The notes beneath the pieces are model-generated. The model searched no databases. It was not told the origin of the DNA and saw only the letters and a list, made by a program, of their open reading frames with translations. Of a stretch of 64,000 nt of DNA, positions 2,118-60,719 are shown in pieces. The DNA is taken from assembly GCA_965649765.1 (NCBI GenBank), contig OZ287749.1, positions 103,664,001-103,728,000 on the forward strand, written 5' to 3'. Made by a program: the position numbers and the translations under genes. This stretch comes from Bispira polyomma (Eukaryota). Each line of letters starts with the position of its first letter. Position 1 is the stretch's first letter.

Positions 2118-2594
2118 ACAGTGCCCCCTTGATGTTAAGGAAGACCTTGAAATTGATAAGATGTGAGTGGGAATATTAATTTTATTTCTATGTTAGACAA
2201 CTAAGTTATTTACACACTTTACTGTTAAGTATTATTTACTAACTTTAGTTAAAGGTCACCCTAAGGCCAAGATTAATTAAATTTAAGTAGGCCCTAAGTG
2301 GGCCATAGTTTAAGATAGCCTTACCGTGACTTCAAGGGCAGGGCAAAATTTAAGGTTAGCCTAACCTAATTTAAGGCTAGGTAGAGTTTAAGATTGGCAT
2401 TACTAGTTTAAGGTAGCCTTAACCTGAGTTTAAGGTTAAGGGCAAAAGTTGAGTTAAGGTCACCTTAACCTGTGTTTAAGGTTAGGTGATTTATGATTTA
2501 AGGAGCTTAGGGTGACCTTAAACTAACTACAATATGAGTATGTTTATAGTTATGACTTTTTGCATATAGATGAGATAATATAAAATATAGCACC
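2118..2594 (-). repeat. Split direct repeat B2 of element 1 (copy of B1 3273-3748)
   Basis: Near-identical ~475 bp copies. Confidence 0.92.
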
Positions 2595-3056
2595 ATAAAA
2601 TATATAAAATGTAGCATGTAAAAAAGTGTGTAAATACATAAAAGTAAAATAATTAAAATGCAAAAATGCTATCCAGCGTCATTAACCTAGACCTATAGTA
2701 CATCCATTTAAAAGAAAAGTGCCGACTAGGATGCACGGGAATTCTCACTCAAACCTTAAGTGGCTGACACAAATATAGCCCCTACACATGTAGTGCTGGA
2801 TGGCGAAATCGAGAAATCGAGGTACAATAGGCATGTGTTGCATTGCATTGTTGCTTGAGACAGTCTTTGCTTTAGCTGGTCTGTCCCGTGATGCCATTGC
2901 ATGTCGATCTGAAACTACATAAGCTATTGTTAGCATTGGTACAAGTTGTTCTCATACATGATAGCATTTATGACATATAATGATACATACAATTTTTGAC
3001 ATACATTATTATTACTACACTTTCCAGGTAGCCAATGGGGAAGAGGGTGGGATTTG

Positions 3057-3275
3057 AAAATGTATAATATAAAATGGCGTTTTGCCCTTCTGAGTTTAGA
3101 ATTATAAGTGGGATATTCCACACATTTGGGGACGACATAATTAATTAATTACTTAAGTGGACCACCCACCCACGAATCACAACACAGGTCAGTACAACAA
3201 GAGTGTTTACTTTAATAAGAATGTAGGACAACAAGAGGGCACTGAATTTACTAGCCTCGTGGGCTACCTTCCACA
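3057..3275 (-). repeat. Split direct repeat A2 of element 1 (copy of A1 8696-8913)
   Basis: Near-identical ~220 bp copies. Confidence 0.92.
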
Positions 3276-3757
3276 GTGCCCCCCTTGATGTGAAGGAAGA
3301 CCTTGGAATTGATGAGGTGAGTGTGAATATTAATTTTATTTCTATGTTAGACAACTAAGTTATTTACACACTTTACCATTAAGTATTATTTACTAACTTT
3401 AATTAAAGGTGACCCTAAGGCCAAGATTAATTAAATTTAAGTAGGTGCTAAGTGGGCCATAGTTTAAGATAGCCTTACCGTGACTTCAAGGGCAGGGCAA
3501 AATTTAAGGTTAGCCTAACCTAGTTTAAGGCTAGGTAGAGTTTAAGGTTTGCATTACCAGTTTAAGGTAGCCTTAACCTGAGTTTAAGGTTAAGGGAAAA
3601 AGTTGAGTTAAGGTCACCTTAACCTGTGTTAAAGGTTAGGTGATTTATGATTTAAGGAGCGTAGGGTGACCTTAAACTAACTACAATATGAGTATGTTTA
3701 CAGTTATGACTTTTTACATATAGATGAGATAATATAAAATATAGCACCAAAGCCCAA

Positions 3758-4747
3758 TTAGGAGGTAGGAGTTGTAAGGAGGGTTTGGAAGGAGAGGGCC
3801 ACTTTGTCAGATGCCTTGTGGTCCGAGGTCACGTACTTCCAAACACAGTCGGATGTCCAAGTTCCATGACTTTGGATGTCCTGTAAGGGGACATTATTGT
3901 TGAAAGCCATAGTTGCGCCAGAGTGGCGAAAGTCATGGAACGTGATGGGTGAGTCATTGAAACCCAATCTGAGGAGTATTACATGGAGGTTTCTACACAA
4001 TCTTGAGTCTGTGAGGGGACCCCAAGAGGCATTTTGCTTATAAAGAAATAAGGGATGATTTTTTTGAGCCAGGGGTGATGGCTAGGATATTTCTAATAGC
4101 TGTTACTGGACACAGAGGTGAGTTAGGGAGGGCAGGAACTTTGAGGACCCTAACCGTGTCCCTGGCCTGAAGTGTTTTGGTCCATTTAATGATAATGTGA
4201 AGACCTGGAGGAGTAAAAAGCACATCCGCCCTGGCCAGCTGGTGAAGTGGAGAATAGGTGGAAGAGGAGTGAGATACTGAATTAGAAATTGTAAGCAAGG
4301 CAAAAAATGCCAGGAGGTAAGCTCCTTCAAATGTTTGCCCCATGTACATTGAATCACATACTTTACTAATCAGGCTTAAGAGGTCAATGTCAATGATTTT
4401 GTTGATTTTTGCCTTAAATGGTCTGTGTAATGTGAGGGCCTTATTGAAATACTTAATACGTGGGTCATTGAAAGTGGTTGTGTCTAAACCATAGATTGCA
4501 AATTTGGCCTTAATTGCTGCCATATGATTGACAACAGAGGAATGAGACATTTTTCCCACTACCAAAAACTCCAGAAATGACAAGAGCAGCATTGGAGTTG
4601 TGTCTTGAATTTTGATTTAAATAAAACAGCAATAAGCCAGAAAAAGGCTGAACATTGCCTTATATGCTTGTTGGGTTGTAGGCCTAAATGCCGTATGGAC
4701 TCTTGTGGCTGCCTGAGCTGCTAGGAAAGCTGCCAGGGAGGGGAGAC
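3758..4747 (-). pseudogene. Tyrosine recombinase of element 1 (frameshifted)
   Basis: AFRPTTQQAY N-terminus, KWTKTLQ, LCPV, FHDFRHSGA, HGTWTSDCVWKY; catalytic Arg motif degenerate (LTISN); ORFs 4038-4592 and 3758-4000. Confidence 0.9.
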
Positions 4748-4757
4748 CTGAAATGTA

Positions 4758-6969
4758 TTATATACTCCAATCAATGTCCAGTAATTGGTCTGGAATGTCC
4801 ACCCACTCAGGGTGAGGTATGATTTGTCTTAGTTTGTACTCATTATGAGCTGTCATGTGCCACCTTGATAAGAGATCCGCAGCTTGACTGTTCTTAAATT
4901 TATGTCAGTGCCCGCCACTTCCATTAGGATGTTGCGTGCAATGGCAGCCAATGTTAGATCTTTAGTCCTGCCTGAGGTAAGGATGGACACCACTGCTTGG
5001 TTATCACAGTGGACCATGAGTTTTTCACCTGCTCAGAGGTATTTCCAGAGCCTGACGGCCACCAGGATGTTTAACATCTCTAGGTGGACGATGGTGAACT
5101 TTAGGTAACCTTGAGGGATAGTCTTGGTGTAAACTAAGCTGGTGCATTTACCACCTAGGCCCGTAAGACATGCATGTAATTCTATGTGGTAAGTTACCGG
5201 GGCATGGTCAAAGACCCCATTAAATTCACTAAGAAATTTGTCGAACCATCTGAGGTCTTGAAAGAATTGCACTGTGTCACTGTGTCAGCCAGTTTCTGGG
5301 GAGGGACCTCAATTGTAAACTTTAATGTATCTACTAGAACAGCTAAATAGTTGACTCTAGTGGTAGGTGTTACAATCTTTTTCTTACTAATCTCAAAACC
5401 TAATTCTTGCAAAAGGTTATACAATATGTTGTATGAGGCATGGGCGTCGTCGTGCGTGCCGTATCCTATGACGTCATCGATGTAGTTGATGACGTCATAG
5501 CCACGCCTATCCATGACGTAACATACGGCGTCACTGAGGCATTGAAAGATAGCACTTCCGTGTCTGTAGCCGAACGACAGACACGTATCTATGTAGTATT
5601 TGTCCATTCTGAGACCGAGGAGGTCATAATTGGCCGGATCTATCTTCACGTGCTGGAATGCCCGACTTATGTCTAGCTTGTATAACAAAGTACCTATTTC
5701 AAGTTTTGCTATTTTATTTGTTATGTCATCGACGGTTGGGAGAGTCAGGAGGAATTCAGTACCTAGATAATTATTTTTTCCAATTGCTGCATTGACTGAT
5801 TTGCCTTTTGGAAAACTCAGATCTATTATCACTCGGCGGTGATGAGGCCCAGGTTTCTTCCTTGTCATAAATGGGGAGATATGTAAAGGGGAAATGGGAG
5901 GTGTGTCAAACGGGTCCATTATTGCCCCATGTTGTTTTTCTTCCGCTAGATACGCTTTAACATCATTTAGAAACTCTACAGCTGACTTATGATTCTCTTC
6001 AACATGACTAAGTTCACTTTGCCGGTCAAAGTCCAACAGGAACCCATATTTTATGAAATAAATGAGCTGGGTATCCCAGTAATTGTTTAGCTTGCATTGC
6101 CATACATCCGGATTTAGTTCAGACTTTAGGACAATTTGTTCTCCTATGTAATTAGTCTTACCACTGTTTCGTACCGTCCGATGGATCTGAAGTGGTGTAT
6201 CCTTACTGGTGTGTTCTTTGTTAACCTCCAGCAATGTCAAGTCACCAAGCGGTATGAAACCAAACTTACTGCGGGTCTGTTTATCCCATTGTTTGTATAC
6301 CGGATTGTCACTAGCTTGTGCTATTATATCCCTATAGCGGGCCTTAACTTGTAACTGCAAGTCATATTTGTCTTCAGTACTAGTGGATGTACTTTGTTTT
6401 GGTGTACTGTGTTCTCTTGTATAAGTGACAGTACTAAAGCTTTTGACAGTGTCCCCCAAATGTGGATCAGTGTTCACCCCATCCCCTGTATATCCTACCA
6501 AAGGTGCAAACCTATTGTGGGACCTCAGACCTTGTTCTATTGTCTGACCTGGGTTTATTTTGGTTGCATAATCTTTGTTGATATTTGGTTTGTTTACATG
6601 GGGGTTAATGGGTTTTTCAGTCTTACCGTATTGCTCGTTGTAGCTGCTCTGCAATAGGTGCCTTTTTACATTATGTTCACATACATTATATACATCATTT
6701 TTTATCAACTGGCTTTGCACCAGGTGACATTTTTCCATTTTGTTACTGTGCATTACATTGTTAACATGTTTTGATACATTATTTACAGATTTACAACTTT
6801 GACTGATGACTTCTTTGGAAATTGTGGTATTGTTTCTGACTACTTCAGCATATGTTTTACCCTTAGCTAGAGCCCAATCTGCCCTCCAGTTTTCACTTGC
6901 TGCAGCTGCAACCACCCCATTTGTTATTATCCTGGAGTAAAATATGGGCACTGCAGACTTGTAGTGCCC
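4758..6969 (-). pseudogene. pol: Pol (reverse transcriptase + RNase H) of element 1
   Basis: RRVIIDLS, KLDISRAF, FGYRHGSAIFQ, NYIDD; RNase H fragment ELHACLTGLGG..IVHLEMLN; frameshifts and a deletion after 5272. Confidence 0.93.
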
Positions 6970-7997: not shown

Positions 7998-9919
7998 AAT
8001 GCCCTCCAACAGTGTGTAGTTATGTTTGATATTAAGATTGTTTATATACCATCGACTGGATAACTTGTATTCAGCCCTGCTTATCCTCACACCTTGGTGT
8101 GTAGTCACAGTTGGGATTGTTTGTGGTTTTGCGGTACACCGTATGCTAAACTGTTCTTATATGTAATCACAGACAATTTGACATCCTAATGCACCCGACT
8201 GCATTGGCTATTTTTGGATCAACCACTCATATAATTCAATGTTTAGTTTGTAGCACAACCGTACACCCAGGTCACTGATACGTGTATAGTCTGTTTGGTT
8301 TTGTTTTTCCACTACTTATGCAGTTCACTGTTTAGTTTATAACACACTCGTGCACTCGAGTTGCACTGATATATATAGTCTAGCAAAAGTATACTGAAAT
8401 AGAATAGATCACAATGTGCTTAGATTTCTGCGAATACATAGAATGAGGGTGTGTGTTTGTAAATTTGATGTAAATACTTTAAAATATGTTAAAAACTAGC
8501 AATTAAGACAGCATAAATCACAGTATACAGCCCTCATTCATAGTCCCAACAAGTAGAGCAATATGCGCATAAATCCAAGCATAAGAAGCTTAATCTTGTC
8601 AGGAACACATCAGCAGGAGCTCCGTATCTTGTAATCCAGAGAAGCACATGAATTCCAAAGTAAAGTTCCTTTTAAAACACACAAGTAAAAATTTTAAAAT
8701 GTATAATATAAAATGGCGTCTTGCCCTTCTGAGTTTAGAACTATAAGTGGGATATTCCACACATTTGGCGGGACAGAATTAATTAATTACTTAAGTGGAC
8801 CACCCACCAACGAATCACAACACAGGTCAGTACAACAAGAGTGTTTACTTTAATAAGAATGTAGGACAACAAGAGGGCACTGAATTTACTAGCCCCGTGG
8901 ACTACCTTCCACACTTCTGCCTCGTGCCTCTAGAATCATGGATTTGACTCCATTCCAGTAGAATTGGTGAAGGCCAGTAGTTTGTAGGACAGAAAACAAA
9001 ACATTGTAACCTTTATAAGACTGATCACCAGTCCGACTCGTTTACCACCAAAAACAATGTCTATTCTGATATAATATGTAGTTGTTGAAACTGATAAACA
9101 AATATCAATTAATAACTTCAAAAATGCAGCTTTTTGTCATACTGATGTTAAAAGTGTTGCAATTTTATTATATTAATTACTTAATATATGTTTCTTTTAG
9201 ATAGTATTTTTTGCTACCATACATACTCCCTTAGATACACATATAGTCAAAGCGTACCCCAAAATACATCTGCCATATTTTTTAGTACTAATCCACAAAA
9301 ACCACACTATATTTATTACACACCCATTTCAATTAATTTACCTCCTAGAACACTGATGTAAGTAATGGGACTTTTACATTTTTAATCACTTTTCGCTTTA
9401 ATGCAGTCAGAGACAAACAACAGACATGTTTATGTGTAACCTATTATCTTGGCTATTGGAGGATGTGGTGAATTACTGTAAATCCACAAAAATATCATTT
9501 TGTTTTAATTTTTCTTGTTTTACCTCTAATATTAGGAGAAAAAACAACCACAGAATAACAATATGTCACAGGATCGAAGGCTTGATGATGACCAACTTTC
9601 AATTATTCTATGGTTCTTTAACCTGTCATCGGGAAAAGGACATATAGACAAAAAATCGCTCTTTTAAATGGTCCTGCCCTACTTACTCTGTGTATTAATA
9701 AGTGTTTCTCAGTAGGCCACCATGGCAGAGACAGATACGTCTGTATATTTATGTATCTGAATTTAAGTGACTGTGGTTAGAAGCACTTTAAAATCACTGT
9801 CCTCTCACCAATGTCGGTTTGATTCCTGTTTATTTTTTCCTTGCCTGCAAGTTTGTGATGTACTTGTGATGTACTTGCTGGAGGTCAGTAGTCGTTGATC
9901 AGCTCTTAAGTTGTCTCAC

Positions 9920-17939: not shown

Positions 17940-20900
17940 TTGTTAAGACAAGAGAACTGAGTCAATTCCTGGAAAAGAAAAGGCTATTGTTACTCGCAAC
18001 ACACTAGTTGAGGATCTGAAAGAAACTGTCAAAACAAGAGTGGACCTGCAAAAAGTGTGGTATAAAGTTTCAACAACTACAAAAATGGATAAAACATAAA
18101 AAGAGTTGTGAAGGATTATTGTGTACTCCTAAACTGAAAATTCAGTGTGTTAATTGTGAAAAATTCTTTTCTCAAAAGTCGAATCTAAAGAGACATCAGC
18201 TAAAATGTGACCTTACAGATGATAAAGAGCCTTCCTTTAAATGTGTGAAATATAAGAAGGTGTATACATTGAAATGTAATTATTTGAAGTATCTAAAGAG
18301 TTGCAAGTTATTAAATTCTGTCCCTACAAAAACCGTTTGTTGTGGTATTTGCAAGGAGAAATTTTTCAGTCGGGGGGATTTATACTCACATAGATTAAAT
18401 CAACACGGTGGTGGAGAGCAAAATATTGATGAAAGTGGTAATTCAGACAGATTTCAGCTAAATTCTCCACCGTGGTTGAATGAAGCTGGTGAAAATATAA
18501 ATCCAGAGTTAGAAAAAATTTATAAAACAAATGAATCACACATATTTGCTCCTCACCAAACAGATAGTGTTGTGAAAAAATATAATTTTCCCACTGAAAA
18601 TTTGAAAGGAGGGGTTGAAGAAATTATGAAACATATAGAAAAAATCAAAACTCAGCGTTCAAAATTAATATTAATTTAGGTTTTATTCTGAAGAACAAGA
18701 AATCAGGTAAATACAGATATTACATTCCTTATGCTAATTCTTATCTATTTCCGAAACCTTACATCATTTCCAGACATACAAATTTGAGAGTTTTGAAAAA
18801 CAAACTCAAGAAATTAAACCCCAGTGAATATATTTTGAATAACAGACCCAACAGTCGGTATATTCCAGAATATATAACCAATATAAATTTTGATGTGAGC
18901 CTAATGGATTACGTATTAGGTAATCCTTCAGACTTCCCAGAATTTGTGAAAAACTGTAGAAGCGTTTTTACATTTTTAAAGGTTCCAAAAACAGGAAAAA
19001 CATACACTGACAATATGTGTATTTTTCGTTGTCTTGCATTTCATGAGATAAAAAATAGAAAGAGTTTAGACACTTTAACTAGAAGGAAGGTTTTTGAATG
19101 GCTTGATTATAAATCTTACAAAGAACCAAAACGTTTTAAAGGGGTAACATTAGAAGATATTCCTGATTTAGAAAACTGTTTTCAAATCAATATTTCTGTT
19201 TTCCAGCTTTTAGAAAATTCATGTGTAATCACACATTATAATTCTAGAGGAACTTTTGACAAATCCATAGATTTAGATATGCAAAATCATCATCTATCAT
19301 ATCTAAATAATTTGAGCTTGTATGCCAAAAAGTATCAATGTAATAAATGTGAAATACATTTTAAGCACAGGACGTATCTATCCAAACATTTCAGAGTGTG
19401 TTCAAAGGTAACAAAATTCAAATTCCCTGGTGGTTTTCACACACCCAAGCATAATGTTTTTCAAGAACTTGAAAATTATAATATTTTTGTCGCAGCAGAA
19501 GACAGATTTTGTCCCTATTTTATCACTTTTGACTTTGAATCAATTCTTCAAAAAGAAAAGTTAAGTCAGAACTCAGAAGTAACAAAATTAATGTGGAGAG
19601 AAAAACACATTCCAATATCAGTCGGTGTATGGTCAAATGTTGAAAATTTTGAGGAAGGAAAATGTTTTGTAGATTTTAATATGGATAAATTATTAGCAAA
19701 AATGGTTGAATATATCGAACAGATTTCAAACAAAGTTAAGACTTGACAAATGTTCAAATATCATTCATGCTTTCAAGAACTAGATAGACTTTTAAATGAG
19801 TTACAATCACTTGAAACTCAAAAAGACATTGAACAAAATAGTGAAAATTTTGGAAGTGAAGAAGATGAAGTTCCTTCTGTTTCTTTTCAAAAAAGATTCA
19901 AGAAACAAAACTGTTTTGACAAAGCTATTGATAATTTAAGAAAAACTACTAATCTTCAAGTAGAATACAATAATTATAGTGACGTCAGCGAATTTGAAGA
20001 CGATATTTCTGAGAATGAGGAAGAAGAGAATTTTCTTGAAAATATCTTTCATGAAGAACCTCAAGCTTGTGAAGAAAACATAGCACAAATTGTGCCCTAG
20101 AACTCATTTCTTAAAAACTGTGAGAAAAAAAATCCAAACTTTGAAAGAGAGACTAGAGTCTTACTACGAATGCACACCAATCTTAGGCTTTAATTCTTTA
20201 AATTATGATCTTAATTTAGTCAAATCTAAACTGTGTAAACATTTGAAACTTGATGATACACAGAACAATTCTTTTACAGTGAAAAGAAATAATGCTTATT
20301 TAGCTATAACAACCAATACTTTGAAATTTTTAGATATCAGTCATTATATAGCCCCTGGATTTTGTTACTCTCAATTTTTAAAAAGTTATAATGTAACAGA
20401 GCAAAAAGGATACTTTGGTTATCAATATCTCTCAAAATCCGAAGTTCTTGAAGAAACAAATTTACCTCCTTATGAGGCCTTTTACAGTGATTTGAAATCT
20501 TGTAATGTTTTAGAACATGAGTTATTAGATTAGTATAAAACAAACAACATACAGTTAGTACAGCAAGATTTAGAATTAAACTCGTATGATAATCCCTCTA
20601 AATACTTGAATTCACCTATTTCTTATTTAAATTTGTCAACTGAAAAATGTTTAAAACTTTGTTGTTTGTGTGAAAAGATCCAATGTGTGTGTAATAGTAA
20701 GCCTCTTACTGGTTTTGATAATTATTTAGATTTATTAAAAACTTGGAAAGTGAATGATATGAAATCAGTTCAAGATTTGTTAGTCTGGTATAATTTGAAA
20801 GATATCAATCCGTTTACAGAAGCAGTTGAAAATTTACAAAAGCATTACAAAGAAAATAATATTGATCTTTTTAAAGATACAATTTTGGTGCCTGGAGTAG

Positions 20901-23040
20901 CTAGACAAATGCTATTTAAATCAAAAGATGCTAATTTTCAGTTATTTGATCGTCAAAATGCAGACCTTTACAGAAAAATAAAACAATCCATTTGTGGAGG
21001 TCCTTCTATAGTATTTACAAGAGCGATAAAAGAAGGACAGAAATTAAGATGGGTTTCAGAGTTGCTGGTGTATTTGGTAATGAAATATTTGAATTTTTAG
21101 GAGATTATTTTCATGCTTGTCCTAAATGCACTAACAAATTAAAGTTTAACAAACCAAAATCTTGGTTAATTAAACAAGAACAAAGATACCAGAGAACTAT
21201 TCTAAGAAAAGAATATTTAGAAAGTTTAGGATATACTGTAAATGAAATTTGGGAGTGTGAATATAAAGAAAAGTTTAAAAATTGTGTTTAACACATTCAA
21301 GAAAGATATTTACCCAAATATTACAGTTCTCATAAAAATGGTTTGTCATTAACAAAAGTATTAAAAGACATTAAAAACGGTGAATTATTTGGTTGTGCCG
21401 AAGTTGATATTGAGACTCCTTCTAAATGGACTGAAGATTTTGTTCAGTCGATCTCACCTCAGGAATATTACTCTGAATTTAGCCCTATATTTTGCACCAC
21501 TGACGTACCTATGAGTGTTATCGGTGAACATTTGACAAATCACATTCAAAATCATGATTTATCTATGGAGAGTAGGCAATTATTAGTAGGCGGGCTGAAA
21601 GCAAATAAGATTATGCTTGCTACACCTTTACTACAACGGTATTTAAAACACGGAATTTTAATAACTAGAATTTATGAAATCGTGGAATTTTCACCCATTC
21701 CTTGTTTCGCTCAATTTGTTTCTGACGTCACAGAAAGTCGCAGGGTCGGAGACAAATCTCCTCATTTAGCTTTAATAGGACAAACTGCAAAACTTTTGAA
21801 TAATTCCGCGTATGGATCATGTATTATGAATAAGGAAAACTTTATGAACATTAAATATGTGAAAGGTGACTCTCCAGCAAAAATTGAAATAAATAAACCA
21901 GAATTTCGAAAAGCTACTTTGTTAGATGAAAGATACTACGAGATAGAAACAGCCAAACGCAGAATTTGTTTAGATGTACCAATTCAAATAGGGTTCTTTA
22001 TTTTAAATTATGCAAAATTAAGTATGTTAGAATTTTACTATGATAATTTGTGTCAATACATTCCTAGAAATAGATTTGAGTGTATACAAATGGACACTGA
22101 TAGTTTGTATTTTGCAATAGCTGGAAAGTCTCTTGAAGACGTAGTTTACAAGCATAAAAAACATGAATTTCAAAGAAAAATCAAAAATAATTGTGGTGAT
22201 TTTGAATTAAAAGCTGATAAAGATCACTATTTCCCCCGAGATTGTTGTACTAAGCATAAACAATACGATTTAAGAACACCAGGTCTTTTCAAAAAAGAAA
22301 GTTCTGGAAAAGAAGTGCTTGCTTTATGTTCTAAAACATATGTACTAGCTGAAGAAATTGGATTCAAACTCTCCTGTAAAGGTGTTAATAAAAAATCAGT
22401 TAAAGATCCTGTCAAAATATTTCAAGACGTTTTGAAAACACAAAATGTCCAAACAGCTTTAAATAAAGGTTTTAGAGCAAAAGACAATTCGATGTTTACA
22501 TATTCTCAAGAAAGAATAGGTTTTAATTACTTTTACTATAAACACAGAGTTTGTGATGACGGAATACACACAGAACCTTTAGATTTGGTTTTGTCACTTT
22601 GGCCAAATTATGAAAGGCATGTGTTTTTCAGAGATTTTACTAATCCTTTATGTATTTCTCACAAATTTCCTTGTAGATATAATGAGAGAACGTTTGAATC
22701 AATAGAACATTTTATGTATTTTGCTTTTGCTCGTTTTTACAAAGAAAAATCTATTGCACTTTTAATTCAAAAATCATTCCAGAAAACCAAAATTCTACAA
22801 TTACTGAAGGATATAAAGATAAGTTTTATTTGGTTTGATAAACTGAGAGAGCTTTTACAATTGAGTCTAAAGGAAAAATATGAACATTGCAATTTGTTTA
22901 GACAAGCACTTGATAATATTTTGTTTCAAGAAATTATCTTTGCTGACAAGGATAAGTATTTAGGTTGTGGAATGGAATGTAGAATAGCTGAACTAACTGA
23001 TAGTGCAAAATACCCTGGTCAAAATCTACTGGACTGTTGA
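17940..23040 (+). pseudogene. polB: Protein-primed family B DNA polymerase with N-terminal zinc fingers, internal VSR-like nuclease and C-terminal NADAR-like domain
   Basis: TFDFES, GFNSLNYD, YNLKD exonuclease motifs; GGPSIVF; KLLNNSAYG; MDTDS; FEFLGDYFHAC..IWECE insert; split over several ORFs; motif A apparently deleted near 21050. Confidence 0.93.
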
Positions 23041-25168: not shown

Positions 25169-26290
25169 GAAAATTTTTTTATTTCATTTTCATCTATCCA
25201 AGTATCAAATTTAGATCCCCAACCTTTCCAACGAACAAGTAGTCTTATTTTACCTTTAATTTTTTTTCTGAACTATCTTTTCTATATCATACTGAGTGTC
25301 TTGACTTACATTAACCTTTTGAAGTTCAGAGGTAGAAAACTTAGCAATTATAGGCTCATTATTGAAATCTTTTACTTCATATTTCTGAATACCTTGATTT
25401 AAGTCCCTTGTGGTTATAATGAATAATTCATCAGTCCATTTTTGATCTGATTCTTTGTTATAGACAATTTGTAGTTTTGTCAAGCGAACAATATCACCTA
25501 ATTTGAACTTGTATAAAGGGGTATTTCTTTGTGATTTAGGTAAAGCGGTTTTTTTCTTGAATTTGACTATTTTAGGTAGTTTTTTTTCATACTGGATTTT
25601 CCATAAAATAGGGTTTCCAACTTCAAGAGCTTCTTTAGGGGACATTTTAATTGTACTATGATATGATTTATTATAACTATCAGTTAAGTTTTGTAAAACA
25701 TCAATCCATTTCCTAGTTTGTTATATTCCATATATCTAGCTATTTTCATTTTTAAGGTGCGAATAACTCGTATAATTAGCTTTGGAGTGTTCCGAAGTTC
25801 CAATGTGTTTCACATTATTTTCTCTGATGAATTTATCAGCTAATGCTAAGTACTCTGTCCCACGGTCACTTCTCAGGACTAATGGTTTGTTTTCTTTAAA
25901 AACAAGTTTCAACGCGTTCACCGTTTCTTTTGAAGTCAATGTTTTAAGTGGTACCGTGTACAAATAATGAGATAAAATATCTATAAACACGGCTATGTAT
26001 TTGTAACCTTCGTTTTGTGAAGCAAACTTTTCATAATGGGCTGTATCTGTGTCTTGCATATATCCCTTAATGGGTACTATAACTTTAGGTCTCTTGAATT
26101 TTCTGATAACTTTCCTATATAGAGTGTAGCTATTTTGTTTATTTAACCAATTTTGAATAAATCCTTTAGAAATATCGGACCTTTCCTTTTTAACTAAATT
26201 ATAAAACTTTTGTAATCCTGCAAAAGAACTTGGGTTTTCTGGATTAAAATACATTTTTTGCAGATAATCTTCTTTCTCAGAATCAGCCAT
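25165..26290 (-). pseudogene. Retroviral-like (rve) integrase with C-terminal chromodomain
   Basis: YFNPENPSSFAG, QDTD, FIDILS, SDRGTEY; FKLGDIVR..KWTDELF; YDIEKIV..LLVRWKGWGSKFDTW; frameshift at the third catalytic (Glu) motif. Confidence 0.9.
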
Positions 26291-26654
26291 ATTGCTTTAG
26301 TAATTAGTCCAGCTATTCTTCCAATTGTTTTTGTTTAAGGGTTTTGTTTCAGTTAAAAGTCTGTTTGTGTTTGGTTCTGCAGGCGGAGGTGGTGTTAGTG
26401 GTTAAATTGATGATTTATTTAAATCTTTTGTTTCAGAATGTTGAGAAATTTCACTGTGTATGTTTTCATTCTGTTTGTCTTCAATTTCAGTTTTCAAGTC
26501 TTTGTTTGAACTACCCCCATTTTTTGTTAATAACGAGTATATTTATCATAAGGTATAAGAACCATTTTTCTCATTTTATTAACGTTAATAGCTGCTTTTT
26601 AAACTCAGCCAAAAGTTTCAAAATATGAATATGAATTTCTGTTTTTTAATGTTT

Positions 26655-26876
26655 TTAATATTTCTGCTGGCTATTTTTTTTCAATAACGCCTTCTTCTTG
26701 TTAACAATGTTTCTATATTTAGTTGACAATGGAATATTCAACAAATTATGACTTATTTCACTTATAAGAGTAACTTGTTCAGGAGAAATTGTATCTAACA
26801 AAGCTTTTGCTTGGTTAATAGGTGAAGTTAACACTAAAATAATATATTCTTTATGTTTTCTAACATAAGAAATCAT
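26655..26876 (-). CDS. Conserved small Polinton protein, unknown function
   Basis: QAKALL..QV..ISEI..NLLNIPL pattern and position downstream of the ATPase, as recalled for Polintons. Confidence 0.55.
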   Translation of the reverse strand: MISYVRKHKEYIILVLTSPINQAKALLDTISPEQVTLISEISHNLLNIPLSTKYRNIVNKKKALLKKNSQQKY

Positions 26877-26926
26877 TGTCGCTCATAATCCCCTAAGTCA
26901 ACACTGAATGAGACTTCAAAACACTG

Positions 26927-27568
26927 TCATTGATATACTATTGTAGGTAATTCGGTTGGAAAAATATTGTTTCTTAATCTGTAAGCTTCGTTACTTATAG
27001 GGGATAAATCAAGAATCAAATAACCATAGGGTTTTGCGAGAGCGTCAATATAAGCTTGTTTCAACAAGCTTTTCATACCGATTTGTTGTGATAAAATATT
27101 TACTTGTTGAAGATTTCTGGGGTTCTTTAACAAAACGGTATAAGCTGTATTCAAAGTAAGAGTTCTGGAACATTTACCTTGATAAAACAAATTTTGATTT
27201 ATGTAAATAACTGTAATATTGTTGTGGTGACTTATTTGGGTGAATAACTTTTCAGCTTCTTTGCTGTTGGCTACTTCATGTTGAAGGTCATCTAAGCATA
27301 TTATATTATGATTTGAGTCAAATACAGTTCTTATTTTTTCCAAATTTGGTAAACCTTCCACAAATTCTATGTTTAAATTTTTTTCCATGTCATCAAATAT
27401 AGGTTGCCAAACAGAATAACAATAAAGAATTTTTGTAGGTGGATTTTCAAACATAATATCTTTTGCTTTTAACAATTTATACAACCAAGTAGTTTTACCA
27501 CTACCAGTCATTCCTGATATCATCCATGTTGAAGGACACTCAAATTTAACAATCTTCCATGTTAACAC
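26927..27568 (-). CDS. A32/FtsK-like DNA packaging ATPase
   Basis: Walker A GMTGSGKT, Walker B IICLDD, LFTQISHH..QNLF, PYGYLILDL. Confidence 0.93.
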   Translation of the reverse strand: MLTWKIVKFECPSTWMISGMTGSGKTTWLYKLLKAKDIMFENPPTKILYCYSVWQPIFDDMEKNLNIEFVEGLPNLEKIRTVFDSNHNIICLDDLQHEVANSKEAEKLFTQISHHNNITVIYINQNLFYQGKCSRTLTLNTAYTVLLKNPRNLQQVNILSQQIGMKSLLKQAYIDALAKPYGYLILDLSPISNEAYRLRNNIFPTELPTIVYQ

Positions 27569-35339: not shown

Positions 35340-35993
35340 GGCCTTTAAACTCACCACTGGACACATAACATGATTATTTAATTCAGGGAGTTTAACCATG
35401 TGGACTTGATCAGGAGATTGTAAATTCTTTGCCAATTTCACGAATATGGACTCCAGGAAACTGAAAACTCACATCAGAACGACATAAATGTTTCTGGGGA
35501 TCAAAGTGATTAGAAGAAATCGGAGCAATATTGGAGATTCGCAAAAATCCATAAAAGGCTACCAAAAAGGCAGATCTATAAGTCCACGTGCTTTCATACA
35601 TCCCGCAAGAGCGAGAAATGTCTCTAATCTGGTTCACTGAAAAAATTCCCTTAGGACGAGATTTCACCACTCCTTCATACAGTAGTGCCTTAACAAACCT
35701 CCTGACAACCAAATTGTCCCAAGACTGTGTTGGCCAATTAAAACAACCAAACTGAAACTTCACAGCAGAGATGTAATTATTAATCACACAATATGATAAA
35801 CTTTGTGAGGCTAAAAACTCAAGAAAAGGTAAAACAGAGGGGACTGACCCCCATGACTGTACATCATGATATAACATAAAGGCCACAAAGACCTTGAACT
35901 GTTTATCGTATTGTCTATGTGTAGATGATATAATAGCATTCTGGGAGCGGTCAAGAGCAGAAACAACCGCCCCTCTTAGACTAGGAACTATAC
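35340..35993 (-). pseudogene. Tyrosine recombinase of element 2 (C-terminus lost)
   Basis: STHRQY..FVAF, AFYGFLRISN, LCRSDV, MCPV. Confidence 0.85.
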
Positions 35994-52246: not shown

Positions 52247-54413
52247 TTTCCTCTTGAGTAAGAGTTCAAGGTAATTCAATTATGACTGGGTGTCAAATCT
52301 AAAATACAACAACATCTCTCTTCTCTGACACTCAATTAAGTAGATTTAATCATATTCAAATGTATGATACAATTAGCATTATCTACCACAACAAATGTCA
52401 AATGTTTTCCTAAATACAGCCCTGGCAGCATACTTAGCAACTAATCTTTTCAAATCTTGTAAAGTTTATATTTTGGAAGCTTAGTTTCCTACATTGTTTT
52501 AAGTCAATGATGGGAAGTCATCACACAGACGTATTAAAGTTTTCCAACCCTCTAAATGTCCTTTTAACATATAATGCAGCCTTAAATGGTATATTTGGTT
52601 ATAAATACAAAAATCTCGTAAAAAATGATATAAAAATGTTTCTACATATTTTTTTCTAATACTTCATGGGGCTATTGTCTATTAGTTACATAAAACATCT
52701 GTGCTGCTAATGACACTTGCTACTGTTGCCTAGTCAGCTGTAATGCTGAGTATTTGCATGGTGCCTATAAAATAACGGTTTGAGACCCTGCCCCAGCATT
52801 TATCTGGAAAATATGGCAGTAGACTTTTTGAAGGCCAGTGGTTTGTGGGAAAAAAACTTCAAACTACCCTTTTACCCCAACAATAAACTACCCATTGCGA
52901 TGTTAAACCCCAAACTAAAACTACACACAAGACTCTTTTTAAAACATAAAATGTGACATTGTGTGAATCACAAACATATCTTTTTGTATAACATACAGCA
53001 AAAATATAAATAATTACCGTCTTTCGGACAAAAGGTCCATTTATAGCATACAGTACATAATGTACTCTTACTTGTTGCATGACTTCAAGTCTCTGTGCAT
53101 TCAAAGGGACTTGACTTAAAGTCAATCCTCTAAATTCAACTTAAAAAAACTTTGAGTTTCCAACTTAAATTCGACTTCTTCCTGGAATTTGAGGTCACCT
53201 TAAGCTCAGATAGAGCGTTCTTTAACTCACTTGCTTCCGAGTTGAGGTGGTTTACACCTTATGCAAAGGTGACCTTATGCCCTCACCTAACTTAACTGTA
53301 CATATACAAAAACTTAAATATTAACTTTTTAATAAATATTTAAAGCACATTTCTGGGTCTCTGATAGTCTTCACTTAGGGATGTTATCCTCCAAAAGTCT
53401 TAATATGACTGATCCTAAATCCAACTCCCTTACCACCAAGAAACTGCCAATCCTGATATAATAAGCAGCTGTTCAAAGTGATAAACATGTATCAATTGTC
53501 AATTAAAAAATGCAGTTTCTGTCATATTAATGTTAAATATATAGCACCATGAGGTGCACATATGTGTTTATTATGTTCATTACTGAATAGGTATTTTCGT
53601 ATGTTTTGCTACAATACATATATCTAAAGCAATTCTACCTCAAACCACACCTGCTTTACTGTTTAGCAGTAAGCCACAAAAGCCTCAGTATATTTATTAC
53701 TCACCCATTTTAATAAATTTACCGCTAGACCACTGATCCAAGTAATGGGACTTTCACATTTTTACTCCCTGGCTTTAATGCAACCAGAAACAAACTGCTG
53801 GCATGTTTTCGGGGGCAGTGTTAAGTCATTGCCTTTGTCAGTCCTCCACGACCTTAATCTATGAGGGTACCAGTCTGTTACTAACACAGGTATAAAAAAC
53901 TTAAGTCAGTAAACAACCCCCATGTTGTTAAGAGAGAATACAGGTAATTGGATCTGATTGGGCAAGGCCCACAGGACGGTTAACTTACTGGTAAATAAGT
54001 TCAGTTTGAATTTAGCCACAGACAGTGTGGCAGGAATTTTCTGATTTCTGTTTTTTTGCAATCTGTGATTTCTTTTACTTATTTTACACGATTTTACAAA
54101 CTGTGACTTATGATATATATGAACAACACGAGGATTATTTTAGTATTTTAGTGTTTTATGAATGATTGGAAACTATCTTATTGACTGTGTGCTGGCAGCT
54201 GTCTCCTCTCTGACAACCTCATGCTTGATTAGCCCTTGGGCTGGCTATAAAGGGATGAATATCACTTCTAAATTAACATAATTTACTATATTACTAGCCG
54301 AGATATAATCAAGTTGTGAAGTGGTCAGACAGGAGGACTGTGGGCTGTTTTATTCTCGTTTCAGAGACTATATGCATAAATTGCAAAGTAAAAACTGTCA
54401 AAAGACTTACAAA

Positions 54414-55536
54414 ATGCCACAATCGAAAGGGCTGTGTAGAAAGTATGGTAATAGACATGTGCCCCCCACAGGAAAGAAATGTACTAGGGATATTCATATA
54501 GAGACTGACACAGAAGCTGTACTAGAAGCTCGTGTAGTGAAGGACACTCCTGTTAAAACACACGGGCGGGAGAGTCGCGGCGGGAAGAAGTCGGCTGCGG
54601 ATGCGGGTGATACAGACCAGGACATCCAGAAGGAGATCCTTCAACAACTGCAGAGAGTGAACTCAAGGCTGGACGCAGTGGAAGATCAAGTAGCCGAATC
54701 CAGGACCAGGCACACAAAGGACAAGAGGACTGGTGGCAAGTTAAGTAGAACTGTTTTAAGTCAGAAATGTAAAAGGAGTACTAGTGAAGACACCTCAGAT
54801 TCTGAATCCTCAGATGAGGAGCAGGTATTGCCAAATCTAACCACTTTGAAAAGTTCCACTTCCTTTCAGCGTCGGGTTGATACTAGATTAAGGGAGTTGG
54901 AGAAGGAAAGTCAAAATTCAGGTAACGATAATTCAAGTAAGATCAAGTCAAAAAGGGGGGGGGGAGGTGGTTGATGTAGTAGTGAAAAATAAGGTAGCGT
55001 GGCCCCAGGAGGCAATTTTAGGAGGGGTTACCAGAAATAGAATGTCTTATGACCAATTGTCTTTGACCCAATGGGTTCAGGAGTTTTGCAAAAATATTTT
55101 GGAAGAGTCAGACAGTGACAAACGTGATAAAATGGTTATGTACATGTCAGACCTCATTGAGGACGCCACGGATTTTACATGGCAGGGCGCCAAGGCAGCA
55201 CATGCTATCCTGCTGTGTGAAATGGAAAGGGGCACCCTCACATGGGATGACAGCAATCAAATCGATAGGATTCGTAGGGCTCACGCTCAGAAACATACCA
55301 GTAATACCTTTGGCAGTAAAAATTGGGATAAAAAGTAAGATCAGAGTGGCAAAATATATTGGTTTTGTAAGTTTTATCAAACAGGTATGTGCACACATAC
55401 AAAAGACCATGAAATTGGTGGTAAGTTACATAAGCATATTTGTGCTCACTGTCTGGCTACAGGTAGGGTTCTGTCCCATCCAGAGAAAGATTGTCTTTTT
55501 GTAAAGAAAAATAGTCAGCAGCCAAAAAACGAGTAA
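54414..55536 (+). pseudogene. gag: Gag-like protein of element 3
   Basis: CRKYGNRHVPP, VAWPQ, WQGAKAAHAILLC, C-terminal CKFYQTGMC..HICAHC..HPEKDC; frameshift in a G run and a premature stop. Confidence 0.82.
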
Positions 55537-57915
55537 TCAGCTGTCTTCAGAATCCTAGTACAGAAGGCAGCTGGAAACTGGGTAAGAAAGGTCAGTCAGG
55601 AGTCAGTTGTAGTAACACAGTTAAGGTTTTTAGTGAATTGAAAAAAACAGCAAATGGTAGTAATGAGACTAAAGATTTGACTAGTCTCAAGAAAGGTAAT
55701 GTAAAAAATGCTAAATGGTCTCAGTATAAAACCAAATATAGTGACAAGTGCTTCTACAGTAGTAGAGCCAGGAAACAAGATGTAGACAGTCTGCTTATAC
55801 GGTCACTTAAAGATGTAATGTGTACATTTAGGGCTGTAAGTTGTGATTTCAGAGCTAGATCATATGCTAGCATAGTGAAAATAGACTTAAGACAAACACA
55901 CGACACACGACTGGCACTGAAATAGTACCACAAAAAGTAAGTCAGCTCAAGCCAAAGACATGTACTGACAGTTTAACAAAGGACCAACAAATACAGAAGC
56001 ACGACCACCCAAAGGGGGAAGTGAGGGAAACCCCTCCCCTTAAACCAATTAAACCCAACAGAGTCGAAGGCCCAGTGGCTAAACAAGAAACTAAACTGTT
56101 ATATGACATAAATGGCATGGAGGACAAGTTCAGTCACTCCATATTATTTAACAATGTCAAAACGAAATCAAAACAACCTGAGGTGCAATGTGACACTTAT
56201 GATAAGTATTTAAGACAGACTGAATTCCAATTTGTTTCATTCCATTGAGTGATCTCACACAACTTGACAGCACGGACAGTAACACTAGTGGTATTGAATG
56301 TCCAATTAAAAGACATAATGAGGTGAAATAGGGGGGCAGGCCTAATTTAATGGGGGCTCGTATACCTGTAGCTTCACATTTGAACATAGAACAATGGCGT
56401 CAAATGCTTAATGGCTATTGGGATAGCCAACTTATTCAATTGATAGAATTTGGCTTTCCTCTGGGCTTCAATAGAAACTGCCAACTCAGATGTGAAATGG
56501 ATAATCATAAGTCGGCTCAGTAACATGCTAAGGATGTCAGTGCATATATCAAGGAAGAAAAAAGTTAGGGAGCCTTAATAGGTCCTTTTTCAAAAAATCC
56601 AATTAAGAATGGACACCATTCTCTATTTATGACAAGACATAAACCTAATTCTGCCAATAGGCGAGTCATAATCGATCTGAGCTGGCCTAAAGGGTTTTCA
56701 GTCAGGAGTCGATAGAGACAGTTACTTAGGTGCTGATTTTAAGTTAAATTTTCCTACCATTGACGATTTGACTAGGGAGCTTACCAAGTTGGGCAGAGGG
56801 GTGCATATCTACAAGCTAGACGTTAGTCGCGTGTTTCGTCATTTAAAAATAGACCCAATGGATTATGACTTGCTAGGTTTACAGTGGGAAGGTACCTACA
56901 TTGATACTTGTCTCGCCATGGAAGTCACTTTTTCCAACGCATCAGTGACGCTGTGCGTTATATCATGCGTCAACGTGGTTTTAGCGTCATTAACTACATC
57001 GACGATTTTTTAGGGTACGGCACACCCACGGTAGCAAAACGCTCATTTGACTGCTTATATGACATAATGGAAAAATTAAAACTGACCATCAGTCAAAAGA
57101 AACTGGTAAAACCAAGTACACAAGCAGTGTGTTTAGGTATCTTAATAGACACAGTCAAAGGAACTGTAGTAATACCAGAAGAAAAATTAACTGAGATTAA
57201 GTCAACAGTTACGCAATGGCAGACAAAAGAGTGTTGTACAAAAAGACAACTACAGTCTTTTTTGGGCCAGTTACTCTACATACACAAATGTGTTAAGCCA
57301 GCGAGGTGTTTTCTTAATCGTATGCTGGAGGTACTGAGGCGCATTGTGAATCCAAACAAAGTTGACTTAACGGAAGACTTCAAACGTGACTTAAGATGGT
57401 TTCAGAAATTTCTGCCTGATTCCAATGGTATATCAATGTATGGCCATAAAAGGGTAGATCACACTTTAGAGTTAGACGCTTGTTTGCATGGGTTAGGGGG
57501 TAAATGGAAGAATCTCGTTTATCACTTACCTATTCCTCTAAATTTCCAAAATTTAGAAATTGTTCATCTGGAAATGATAAATATCTTGGTGGCCTTGAGA
57601 TTATTTGGAATCCATTGGCAAGGCACCAAAGTTCTCATAAAATGTGACAATCAGGTAGTAGTTCATGTTCTCAATTCAGGCAAGGCCAGAGACCCTTACT
57701 TATCAGCATGTGCTAGAAATGTGTGGTATTTGGCGGCAACAACAGACATTGACTTACAATATATACATGTGCTGGGTAAGAATAACAGCACAGCTGACTT
57801 ACTATCCAGATGGACAAATTCTGTGAGCAATATTGTAGAGTTAAACACACTGGTAGATAGCCCAGTATGGCTAGACACATCAATAGAGTTGACACAAATT
57901 GATAACACATTGTAA
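55530..57915 (+). pseudogene. pol: Pol (RT + RNase H) of element 3
   Basis: KLDVSRVFR, NYIDD, ELDACLHGLGG, IVHLEMIN, CDNQ, ADLLSR; several stops and frameshifts. Confidence 0.93.
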
Positions 57916-57984
57916 TTCTTATTATTGTTAAATTGTTCTGTCTTATATTATCAGTAACAATAGATACTATGCTTTGTGTTGTAG

Positions 57985-58958
57985 GATCTGAGGACCTACA
58001 GTCCTTATAGTCTGGAGCTAGTAAGAGGCTGCACATGGCATTCAGGCCCAAGACAAGAAAATGTTATTTAAGTCTTTTCAGAACATTTATTGCATTTTGT
58101 ATGTATACTGGTTTGGTGTTACAAGCTTTAGAAGTAAAAAATATCATGTCATTTCTAGAGTACTTGGTTATAAACAAAGTTTCTGTCCACATGGTGGCTA
58201 ACTATGTTTCAGCGTTAAAAGCCATGAGTATAGTATATGATCTGCCTTTTGAAGTGTTTGATCACCCAAAAATTAAATATTTTATCAAATCTCTTAAAAT
58301 TAACAGAACACATGTGATTGTGAAAAGAAACATAATGAATGTAACTACATTGGAACAGTTGATAAGGCATTGTGGCCACATCAAAACTTCACAGGTCTAC
58401 AAGGCTATCTTCCTCACAGGTTTCTTTGTGTTTTTCAGACTTTCGAACTTAGCTCCACATTCAGTGAAGGAGTTTGACACTTCACCTCATTTTACAGGTG
58501 GGGATGTCTTTTTTGAAAAAGGCGTTGTTAAAATTCTGTTAAAATAGTCCAAAACGTTACAGACGAGAGACAAAGTTCACATAATAACTTTGCCTAAATT
58601 AAAATCTTCACTGCTTTGCCCTTACATGGCATTGAAAAACCTGTTTAAGTTGTATAGCCCTGGTAAGAATGACCCTTTATTTCAGTGTGATACAGTCATA
58701 GGCAGGCAGGTGGTCATTGATTCGCGGGTAAGGAAAATTTTGGCGCGACTTAATGAAAAATTGGGCTGTCCTTCGAATTTTTACACATTCCATGCATTCC
58801 GACATTCAGGTGCCATTCTGGCTTATCAGGCCAAGGTTCCTATACAACAAATCAAAGAGCATGGCACCTGGACGTCGGACTGGGTGTGGACGTATATTCA
58901 AGCAAATGCTAATAATACTGAGGTGGCCACCACCTTCCAAAGACTGTTAAATATCTAG
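57985..58958 (+). pseudogene. Tyrosine recombinase of element 3
   Basis: AFRPKT..Y, FRLSN, K*SKTLQ, FHAFRHSGA, HGTWTSDWVWTY. Confidence 0.92.
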
Positions 58959-60719
58959 TGCTTCTACCCCTACATCTTGGGCTTGAGGCTTTCTGTATCT
59001 TTGATATATATAAAAAAGTAAGTCAGTGTAAAAGTTGAGGTCAATTGAGGATGGAAGGTTTAAATTCAGAATCCACACTTGTGGCTTAACTTAACCTTAA
59101 ATTGGTACACTTTAACTTAACTCTGGTGACCATTCAAGTTAGGGTCACCTCAAACTTCTGTACTCAGGTGTCTCATCATTAGTTTAAGAGCACCTTAAAC
59201 TGAAATTCAAAATGTATTGAATATACTTAAATTAAAATTAACTCTAAGAATAAACTTAAACTGGTTATCAGACATCTGACCTCAGCTTAATTTGCATGTT
59301 GTCATCTTATATTATTGTATACTTTAACATGAAATGTATATAGTCAGTAGTTTAGAACCTATATTTTACACAATTTTACATATATTTTATATAATAAAAA
59401 TATATACACCCTCATAGATTATTTATTCTTGACTTGGTAGTGGTAGGGACTGTCGGGGGCAGTGTTAAGGCATTGCCTTTGTCAGTCCTCCACGACCTTA
59501 ATCTATGAGGGTACCAATCTGTTACTAACACAGGTATAAACAACTTAAGTCAGTAAACAACCCCCATGTTGTTAAGAGAGAATACAGGTAATTGAATCTG
59601 ATTGGGCAAAGCCCACAGGACGGTTAACTTACTGGTAAATAAGTTCAGTTTGAATTTAGCCACAGACAGTGTGGCAGGAATTTTCTGATTTCCCACGCAC
59701 CCTATTCCCTTGGAGTAGGTTAGCATTAAGATAAGCTAGTCCAAGAAATGACTACTATAATTGAGGTGTACCATGTACTCCTTTGCTCAACAGAGACATT
59801 TAAACGGTATGAGCTCGATAGGAAGTTATATTGGTCTCGAAGTGCATCTACTTATGACTCAAGGTTGTTAGTAAGGAATTTGCTTAAAATGCTATAAGTG
59901 ATTTGACACAAGTTACCATTTTGCTGGATCATTGTTTTTACCATGTTATAGCCTGTTAGTCCTCGGTTTTAGTAAAGGTCTTAACTCATGTCACATTGGA
60001 AGAGGCTTTCTGTATCTAAGTTATATATAAAAAAGTAAGTCAGTGTAAAAGTTGAGGTCAATTGAGGATAGAAGGTTTAAATTCAGAATCTACACTTGTG
60101 GCTTAACTTAACCTTAAATTGGTACACTTTAACTTAAGTCTGGTGACCATTCAAGTTAGGGTCACCTCAAACTTCTGTACTCAGGTGTCTCATCATTAGT
60201 TTAAGAGCACCTTAAACTGAAATTCAAAATGTATTTAAGTCCAAACTTAAAGTGAAATTGAGTCTAAGAATAAACTTAAATTGAATATACTTAAATTGAA
60301 ATTGACTCTAAGAATAAACTTAAACTGGATATCAGACATCTGACCTCAGCTTAATTTGCATGTTGTCATCTTTTATTATTGTATACTTTAACATGAAATG
60401 TATATAGTCAGTAGTTTAGAACCTATATTTTACACAATTTTACATATATTTTATATAATAAAAATATATACACCCTCATAGATTACTTATTCTTGACTTG
60501 GTAGTGGTAGGGACTGATGTGTGGCCTGTTGTCTTGGCTAGTGGAGGATTACTGTGAACGCACAAAAATATCATTTCTTTTATAATTGATGGCAGGGATG
60601 AAAAGGGTAGTTGATTTACCTCTAGTGTAAAGACAAAAAAAAACCAATAACAATATGCCACAGCATCACAAGCTTGAGGATGACCATTTATCAATGCTTC
60701 AATGCTTCTTTAGCAAGTA

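Follow-up and report, generated by a model that had tools for sequence, protein, structure and literature searches.

The founding description of the Ngaro retrotransposons is reportedly that given by Goodwin and Poulter in 2004. These elements are placed in the order DIRS (PMC9210276, PMC4157794) and are characterized by an open reading frame (ORF) for a zinc-finger Gag-like protein, an ORF for reverse transcriptase (RT) together with RNase H that has no methyltransferase, protease or DDE integrase, a third ORF for a tyrosine recombinase (YR), and repeats arranged in the order A1 - body - B1 A2 B2. Elements with all of these characters are present in a stretch of 64,000 nucleotides of Bispira polyomma DNA (contig OZ287749.1 of assembly GCA_965649765.1, positions 103,664,001 to 103,728,000), referred to here as the window. 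They may depart from the described elements in the expression of the third ORF, since published accounts give the three ORFs as separate, overlapping or frameshifted, whereas we propose here that a conserved intron lies between the first part of gag and the recombinase. The expression and delivery of the recombinase of YR retrotransposons are essentially unstudied, although surveys note a third ORF that overlaps pol or is frameshifted. No mention of splicing in YR elements, or of the way in which the YR is translated, was found in the accessible literature on these elements, from which the founding Ngaro papers are absent, and to this extent we agree with a first-pass annotation of the window, which likewise knew of no earlier description of such splicing for Ngaro or DIRS elements.

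Splice-like sites in three Ngaro-type elements

The window contains three divergent, decayed retroelements with the gene order gag, RT/RNase H, YR. The first, el.1, occupies approximately 8913-2500 on the minus strand including its repeats, el.2 occupies approximately 39769-35340 on the minus strand and is truncated at its 3' end, and el.3 occupies 53809-60500 on the plus strand including its repeats. Amino acid identity among the three is only 26-50%, and synonymous positions should therefore be saturated between them. Pfam matches were obtained to RVT_1 in the pol of el.1 and el.2 (1.4e-10), to the RNase H-like RVT_3 in el.3 pol (6.9e-4) and, in the el.3 YR, to Phage_int_SAM_4 (1.1e-05) and weakly to Phage_integrase. 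No methyltransferase domain was matched on any pol piece at E <= 0.01, and the pol ORFs stop right at the RNase H region. In an alignment of 22 homologous recombinase sequences, examined for the catalytic pattern R..K..HxxR..H/W..Y, no variation is seen at R, K, H or Y and hardly any at the HxxR arginine and at one more H; the YR copies of the window itself are broken. Split direct repeats of 92-98% identity, arranged as A1 - body - B1 A2 B2, flank and follow the body of el.1 (A1 8691-8913, B1 3654-3749, A2 3052-3275 and B2 2500-2595, minus strand, 96-97% identity) and of el.3 (A1 53809-54048, B1 58985-59436, A2 59453-59692 and B2 60002-60500, plus strand, 92-98% identity), but were not found for the 3'-truncated el.2. 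The three are Ngaro-type tyrosine-recombinase retrotransposons. The recombinase ORF of el.2 ends in a long T-rich run at 35340-35300 (minus strand), where the 3' part of the element and its repeats are missing, and this run looks like a truncation or insertion boundary.

The first-pass annotation had placed a donor-like site inside gag and an acceptor-like site after pol in each element, and all six sites can be read directly in the window sequence exactly where it put them. The donors are TCAG|GTAACT in el.1 (exon end 7583, GT 7582-7581), CAAG|GTACAC in el.2 (exon end 38707, GT 38706-38705) and TCAG|GTAACG in el.3 (exon end 54921, GT 54922-54923). The acceptors are catttcag|GT in el.1 (AG 4749-4748), ttcttgtgttttag|GT in el.2 (AG 35995-35994) and ctttgtgttgtag|GA in el.3 (AG 57983-57984), with the last base of the AG situated 10, 25 and 69 nt past the pol stop, respectively. 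All six sites are in phase 1, that of the el.2 donor being read in the local gag frame, and 2 nt separate each acceptor from the first complete YR codon.

Other parts of the annotation stood less completely. The joining of gag to YR in frame, claimed for all three elements, holds only locally because all three copies are decayed: el.2 gag undergoes two frame changes, and in el.3 a TAG is found at 58008-58010, eight codons past the acceptor. The N terminus of the YR does lack an ATG in el.1 and el.2, whose first Met is at codon 31 and codon 39, respectively, but el.3 has an in-frame ATG at 58035, 17 codons past the acceptor. Whether the three donors lie on one homologous Gly codon is decided by a gappy linker, for they share a single MAFFT column in one alignment (A2) but not in another (A1); the distance from the donor Gly to an invariant WP is 19 residues in el.1, 22 in el.2 and approximately 24 in el.3. 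Finally, when all GT sites of each element were scored with a crude matrix typed from general knowledge, the donors ranked first of 228 in el.1, 24th of 291 in el.2 and eighth of 304 in el.3, and they are not outstanding within any single element; they rise above chance because of the comparison across elements, and not because of the single-element score.

Conservation of the two sites among relatives

A library of 1.84 billion representative proteins was searched with the el.2 YR piece, yielding 740 matches, and a profile search with the YR gave 107 more. Exact look-ups of the corresponding DNA led to twelve places, representing eleven distinct elements, in the five ENA long-read assemblies ERZ22147071, ERZ25069853, ERZ25072384, ERZ25073805 and ERZ21818088. 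The ten elements in which gag is readable share only about 25-70% amino acid identity. Both splice-like sites are kept in two relatives that are intact and multi-copy, L005 (gag 3251-4345, pol 4480-6951, YR ORF to 8086) and L010 (gag 870-2063, pol 2797-5004, YR ORF to 5990). In L009 and L012, which form the RPGT clade, no N-terminal part of gag is readable and the acceptor alone was counted. Alignment scans with Gag or recombinase of JGI metagenome contigs, IMG/VR and GTDB genomes gave no relatives, and a protein search with the N-terminal part of el.1 gag gave no match. On one contig (ENA ERZ22147071 ctg31070l, L004/L005) the recombinase stop is followed, with no gap, by a partial pol of 618 aa and a second, identical recombinase ORF, a head-to-tail partial tandem that could result from recombinase-mediated multimer formation or be an effect of assembly.

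In all ten gag-bearing elements the linker that precedes the WP motif opens with a Gly encoded as [C/A]A G|GT A.., positions -2 to +3 being invariantly AG|GTA and position -3 always C or A. The codons read TCA G|GT AAC in both el.1 and el.3, TCA G|GT AAA in L003, CCA G|GT AGT in L005, ACA G|GT ATA in L006 and ACA G|GT ATG in L011; those of the remaining four begin with CAA G|GT, followed by ACA in el.2, AAT in L002, AAG in L010 and AAA in L007. The residues on either side of the Gly vary (S, T, P or Q before it and N, I, M, K, S or T after it). As a control, 13 other conserved Gly columns were taken from codon alignments of five intact gag ORFs and ten pol ORFs; the A-GGT-A context occurred in 6 of 97 cells, and none of these columns has it throughout. 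Codon bias as the cause of the GGT, which makes up 29-58% of the Gly codons in the elements, is rejected by these control columns. If five clades are counted as independent, at 6% each, the chance of the donor context is about 1e-6, a figure that needs some slack for the choice of position. Among 25 further Gag proteins of the L005 clade the Gly is kept in 23, with P, S, E or Q before it and S, N, T or K after it, which fits NNA before and ANN after. Within the N-terminal part of Gag, no phase-1 AG|GT other than that at the linker Gly is conserved in position.

An AlphaFold model of the L005 Gag (mean pLDDT 62) contains an N-terminal knuckle, helices at residues 55-88 and 142-159, a disordered linker at 160-180, a confident helical domain at 186-289 and a C-terminal zinc motif. 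As modelled, the donor lies at a Gag domain boundary, because Gly163, on which it falls, opens the disordered stretch between helix 142-159 and the helical domain. A Foldseek comparison of the model with the PDB gave no match with E below 1. The helix just before the donor is universal in the Gags compared, but the zinc knuckle is not; the first-pass annotation had included the knuckle in the part of Gag to be fused, which applies to some families and not in general, since the intact L010 Gag has no N-terminal knuckle. The gag of el.2 has an extra N-terminal region (39769-39270, minus strand), comprising a zinc knuckle and a helical region, in common with L002, whereas the intact L010 gag starts at a basic KRK-rich stretch and is without this region. 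The Gag segment to be donated would thus differ between families.

At the other end of the proposed intron, the first conserved YR motif, RP.T, is preceded in all 14 elements by a phase-1 cag| or tag| at a distance of 19-24 codons. The YR frame is closed by a stop 9-159 nt upstream of this AG and is open from the AG onward in all copies but the decayed el.3, and the first Met is situated at or beyond RP.T in nine of the 14. The tails of the acceptor sequences in the window are ...catttcag| (el.1), ...tgtgttttag| (el.2) and ...gtgttgtag| (el.3). The pyrimidine fraction at positions -20 to -4 ranges from 0.47 to 0.88 and is at least 0.65 in eight elements (it is 0.82 in el.2 and 0.53 in L006). 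Strings resembling the branch-site motifs TACTAA or CTRAY were seen by eye in most tracts, although the motif is too loose to discriminate. Many of the YR reading frames in the database run upstream into strings such as LLFLG, LFVG, FLSG, FTE or LSD, and since these are the translated pyrimidine tract followed by NNA-Gnn codons, the same acceptor signal is visible in proteins. In the clade of el.3, L003, L005 and L008 a block of 20 nt ending at the AG, AGATACTATGCTTTGT..TTGYAG, is nearly invariant; the flanks of the block diverge, the proteins are about 50% identical and the ATG within it is in frame in only two of the four elements, so that it behaves as a cis-acting RNA or DNA signal and not as coding sequence.

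The ends GT...AG are therefore found throughout, in 10/10 donors as AG|GTA and in 14/14 acceptors as YAG|, and the AG|GT Gly codon and the acceptor that had been pointed out in three elements are shared by their relatives. In every element where both sites are readable both are in phase 1, with the donor inside gag and the YR in frame with the gag AUG. As judged from these alignments, the nucleotide-level conservation of both sites is in excess of coding need. We consider it improbable that the two motifs have been conserved for reasons other than splicing, as an internal promoter or initiator for a subgenomic RNA, as a replication or recombination signal, or through a preference for one Gly codon. 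The conserved block of the el.3 clade could admittedly be any cis element, and GGT is the commonest Gly codon in most of the elements. However, across clades with unrelated tracts only the YAG and its phase are retained, the donor context extends beyond the Gly codon to the wobble position of the codon before it and the first position of the codon after it and is absent at the control glycines, and the matching phase of the two sites would have to be a coincidence.

A putative Gag-recombinase messenger and its alternatives

We hypothesize, and think it reasonably probable, that the two sites bound a conserved spliceosomal intron which spans the gag C-terminal domain and pol, and the removal of which would give a messenger for the N-terminal part of Gag fused to the recombinase, Gag(N)-YR. 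The full-length RNA would be the messenger for Gag and also, via recoding at the gag-pol boundary, for Gag-Pol, and a fraction of it would be spliced by the host spliceosome. The donor would be a weak MAG|GTA on the Gly codon, in the disordered linker after the conserved Gag N-terminal helices, and the acceptor the YAG 19-24 codons before the recombinase core. Because both sites are in phase 1, the spliced product would be in frame from the gag ATG and would encode Gag(N)-Gly/Asp/Val-recombinase, a protein which by arithmetic only would have about 487 residues in L005, with position 3737 joined to 7110, and about 526 in L010, with 1470 joined to 5011. Splicing would in this way supply the start codon that is missing from the third reading frame and allow a protease-less element to make its recombinase as a distinct product, and the common Gag N-terminal helices might let the fusion associate with Gag or RNA. 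The sites, their matching phase and their conservation are read from sequence; the splicing itself, the pairing of this donor with this acceptor and any role in loading the recombinase into a particle are inferred.

In el.1 (minus strand) the first proposed exon, the N-terminal part of gag, would run from the ATG at 7997 to 7583 (415 nt, or 138 codons and one base) and the donor that follows it is the sole phase-1 AG|GT within that part of gag. The proposed intron of 2835 nt (7582-4748) would take in the gag C-terminal domain and pol, whose stop codon is the TAA at 4760-4758, and would end in the acceptor catttcag at 4755-4748; the second exon, the recombinase (4747-3758), has a stop at 4619-4617 and changes frame near 4040-4080. 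In el.2 (minus strand) the first proposed exon is a long N-terminal part of gag (39769-38707), homologous to that of L002, which begins with the ATG at 39769, contains the knuckle CKKCDCDHEC...C and a helical region, and undergoes its frame changes near 39400 and near 39270, upstream of the donor. The proposed intron of 2713 nt (38706-35994) would again take in the gag C-terminal domain and pol (stop TAA 36021-36019) and would end in a strong pyrimidine tract at 36013-35994, and the second exon (35993-35340) covers the N-terminal two thirds of the recombinase, with a stop at 35412-35410, before the element is truncated near 35340.

In el.3 (plus strand) the first proposed exon (54414-54921; 508 nt, or 169 codons and one base) starts at an in-frame ATG at 54414 and ends after the first base of the Gly codon; it codes for a knuckle of the form CX2CX3HX7C, now decayed, a helical region, a stretch that is acidic and rich in Ser, and the conserved helix. 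The proposed intron of 3063 nt, GTAACG...TTGTAG (54922-57984), would hold the whole of pol as well as the gag C-terminal domain, and stops and frame changes interrupt both: gag changes frame near a G run at 54950-54975 and has a stop at 55336-55338, pol is fragmented at 55500-56900, and its stop is the TAA at 57913-57915. The intron would end in the acceptor block AGATACTATGCTTTGTGTTGTAG at 57962-57984, nearly invariant among the four members of the el.3 clade in alignment A6. The reading frame of the second exon, the tyrosine recombinase (57985-58958), is interrupted by stops at 58008-58010 and 58545-58547.

A different explanation is implied where the literature describes the ORFs as overlapping or frameshifted, namely that there is no splicing and the YR is an extension of Pol produced by stop-codon readthrough or frameshifting. 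A point absent from the first-pass annotation is that the YR lies in frame with pol behind a single TAA in el.1 and el.2, and readthrough stays open for these two elements on that account. Furthermore, two database proteins (P0054 and P0004) run from the C-terminal region of pol into the recombinase without a stop, and recoding does serve gag-pol in these elements. However, the relation of the YR to pol varies from family to family. In el.3 and L005 the two frames differ and are separated by 69 nt with stops and by about 160 nt, respectively, L001 and L007 have a spacer of about 380-400 nt, with many stops in L001, the YR is offset from pol by one base in L010, and in L002 and L009 it overlaps pol in another frame. 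Readthrough or frameshifting from pol as a general mechanism is ruled out by this inconsistent spacing and frame, and it would leave unexplained both the phase-1 AG in 14/14 elements and the conserved block, which is independent of frame; as an account of the elements as a whole we regard it as unlikely. Three other database proteins (P0023, P0051 and P0109) join an RT or RNase H segment straight to the recombinase, and these may be internal deletion derivatives or other splice forms.

As for the gag-pol boundary, a canonical -1 frameshift heptamer, A_AAA_AAC, closely precedes the gag stop, in the zero frame of gag, in L005 (4315-4321) and el.3 (55524-55530), with pol open in the -1 frame, whereas in el.2 (38101-38099) and L010 an in-frame stop parts gag from pol. 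Related families therefore seem to use different gag-pol recoding.

A number of observations weigh against the proposed Gag(N)-YR messenger. The G at position +5 is missing in eight of the ten donors, which are mediocre by the crude matrix, as the rank of el.2 (24 of 291) illustrates, and the pyrimidine tract of el.1 is poor (fraction 0.47). An in-frame Met is found 3-11 codons past the acceptor in L006, L007, L008, L009 and L012, and in these five translation of the YR could begin at this Met, on a subgenomic RNA or one spliced in another way. The C-terminal zinc motif of Gag (F.xG[T/V]C) contains a second conserved Gly, which is encoded by GGT in 4/4 elements (codon 286 in el.1, 344 in el.2, 313 in L005 and 348 in L010), is also in phase 1 and has the AG|GT context in three of the four; this may be due to chance, or the codon may serve as another donor, one that would leave almost the whole of Gag joined to the recombinase. 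In addition, all relatives come from the five ENA assemblies, and zebrafish, fungal and protist Ngaro elements lie outside the comparison. Lastly, no Gag(N)-recombinase protein was found among the best 150 of the 740 YR matches, all of which have at most 380 aa, nor among the 107 profile matches, all of at most 366 aa although lengths up to 597 were admitted, and the 25 matches to the L005 Gag N-terminal part are Gag only, none being listed with a recombinase domain. This absence is a weak negative because nearly all entries are ORFs called on genomic contigs, and it mainly shows that intron-less, open-frame retrocopies are absent from the assemblies searched. The central claim of the first-pass annotation, splicing to a Gag(N)-YR fusion, is thus supported in part, in so far as both sites are conserved at the nucleotide level well beyond coding need, but has no counterpart in a fusion-length protein among the database matches.

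Some of these observations would also be expected if the acceptor is real but pairs with another donor, located in the 5' leader, elsewhere in gag or at the zinc-motif Gly, with the YR then made from its own Met or a non-AUG codon, or together with nearly all of Gag. Such a pairing has a small but appreciable probability in our estimation. The early Met in five of the 14 elements is in keeping with it, as are the second all-GGT, phase-1 Gly column in Gag (column 401) and the presence in el.2, L007 and L010 of one further upstream phase-1 AG|GT each in gag. Nevertheless, only two of four elements show the full A-GGT-A context at the zinc-motif Gly, which is missing from L007, and the remaining phase-1 AG|GT sites are not positionally conserved. 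Moreover, a Met before or near RP.T is lacking in nine of the 14 elements, and still the segment of 19-24 codons that precedes this motif keeps its length and a helix-like pattern, for which reason an upstream phase-1 coding exon is needed. The lack of a usable ATG in most families, taken together with the variable relation to pol, likewise suggests that an upstream coding exon supplies the YR start, and the Gag(N)-YR messenger remains our preferred explanation. It is tempting to extend it to the whole of this branch of Ngaro elements, including the RPGT clade, with the recombinase made solely as a Gag(N)-fusion from an ancient intron and the Gag helices tethering the enzyme to Gag assemblies or to the RNA of the element, in place of the polyprotein-plus-protease strategy of the long terminal repeat (LTR) elements, but this wider proposal we put forward tentatively, as conceivable and somewhat short of an even chance.

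Elsewhere in the window, a run of long ORFs at 18119-23040 (plus strand) includes a C2H2 zinc-finger ORF (2.1e-07) and a weak match to NADAR (7.9e-05, below the Pfam cut-off) and is unrelated to the Ngaro elements. The ORFs at 25739-27568 (minus strand), which match an rve integrase core (2.7e-08) and, weakly, P-loop or viral helicase-like domains, probably belong to another mobile element.

Comparison with known spliced retroelements

If the proposed intron is real, it would constitute a concrete and easily tested mechanism of expression for the recombinase and would account for the ATG-less recombinase ORFs met with in annotations, and such elements would be better annotated as a spliced model than as three ORFs. 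It would also hint at how a retroelement without a protease brings its integration enzyme to the replication complex. Finally, it would represent an independent case of a retroelement that uses a deliberately weak splice donor inside gag.

The precedent for such a donor is the env mRNA of avian sarcoma/leukosis virus, in which the donor lies inside gag, Env is made from the gag AUG with Gag N-terminal residues, and the site is suboptimal, most of the RNA being left unspliced. The gag-internal donor and the use of the gag AUG for a downstream protein, proposed here from sequence, would be common to both systems. However, in the virus six Gag codons start the Env signal peptide, whereas the segment in the Ngaro-type elements would amount to 138 to about 350 codons with folded helices, and its partner would be an integration enzyme. 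The pol mRNA of foamy viruses and the env mRNAs of gypsy-type elements are spliced messengers of their own, with a donor in the leader, their own AUG and no Gag segment. They resemble the present proposal in that a retroelement expresses an enzyme or an accessory gene through a dedicated spliced messenger and not as a recoded Gag fusion, but differ from it in their leader donors and their own AUG, since here a Gag segment would be fused to the product. In rice tungro bacilliform virus (ORF IV), Ogre and BARE, splicing brings a distal ORF into frame with a short one upstream of it or shifts the Gag:Pol ratio. The joining of ORFs in frame, or the altered ratio of Gag to Pol, is thus a likeness to what we propose, although these are other classes of element, expressing other proteins, and none of them involves a tyrosine recombinase.

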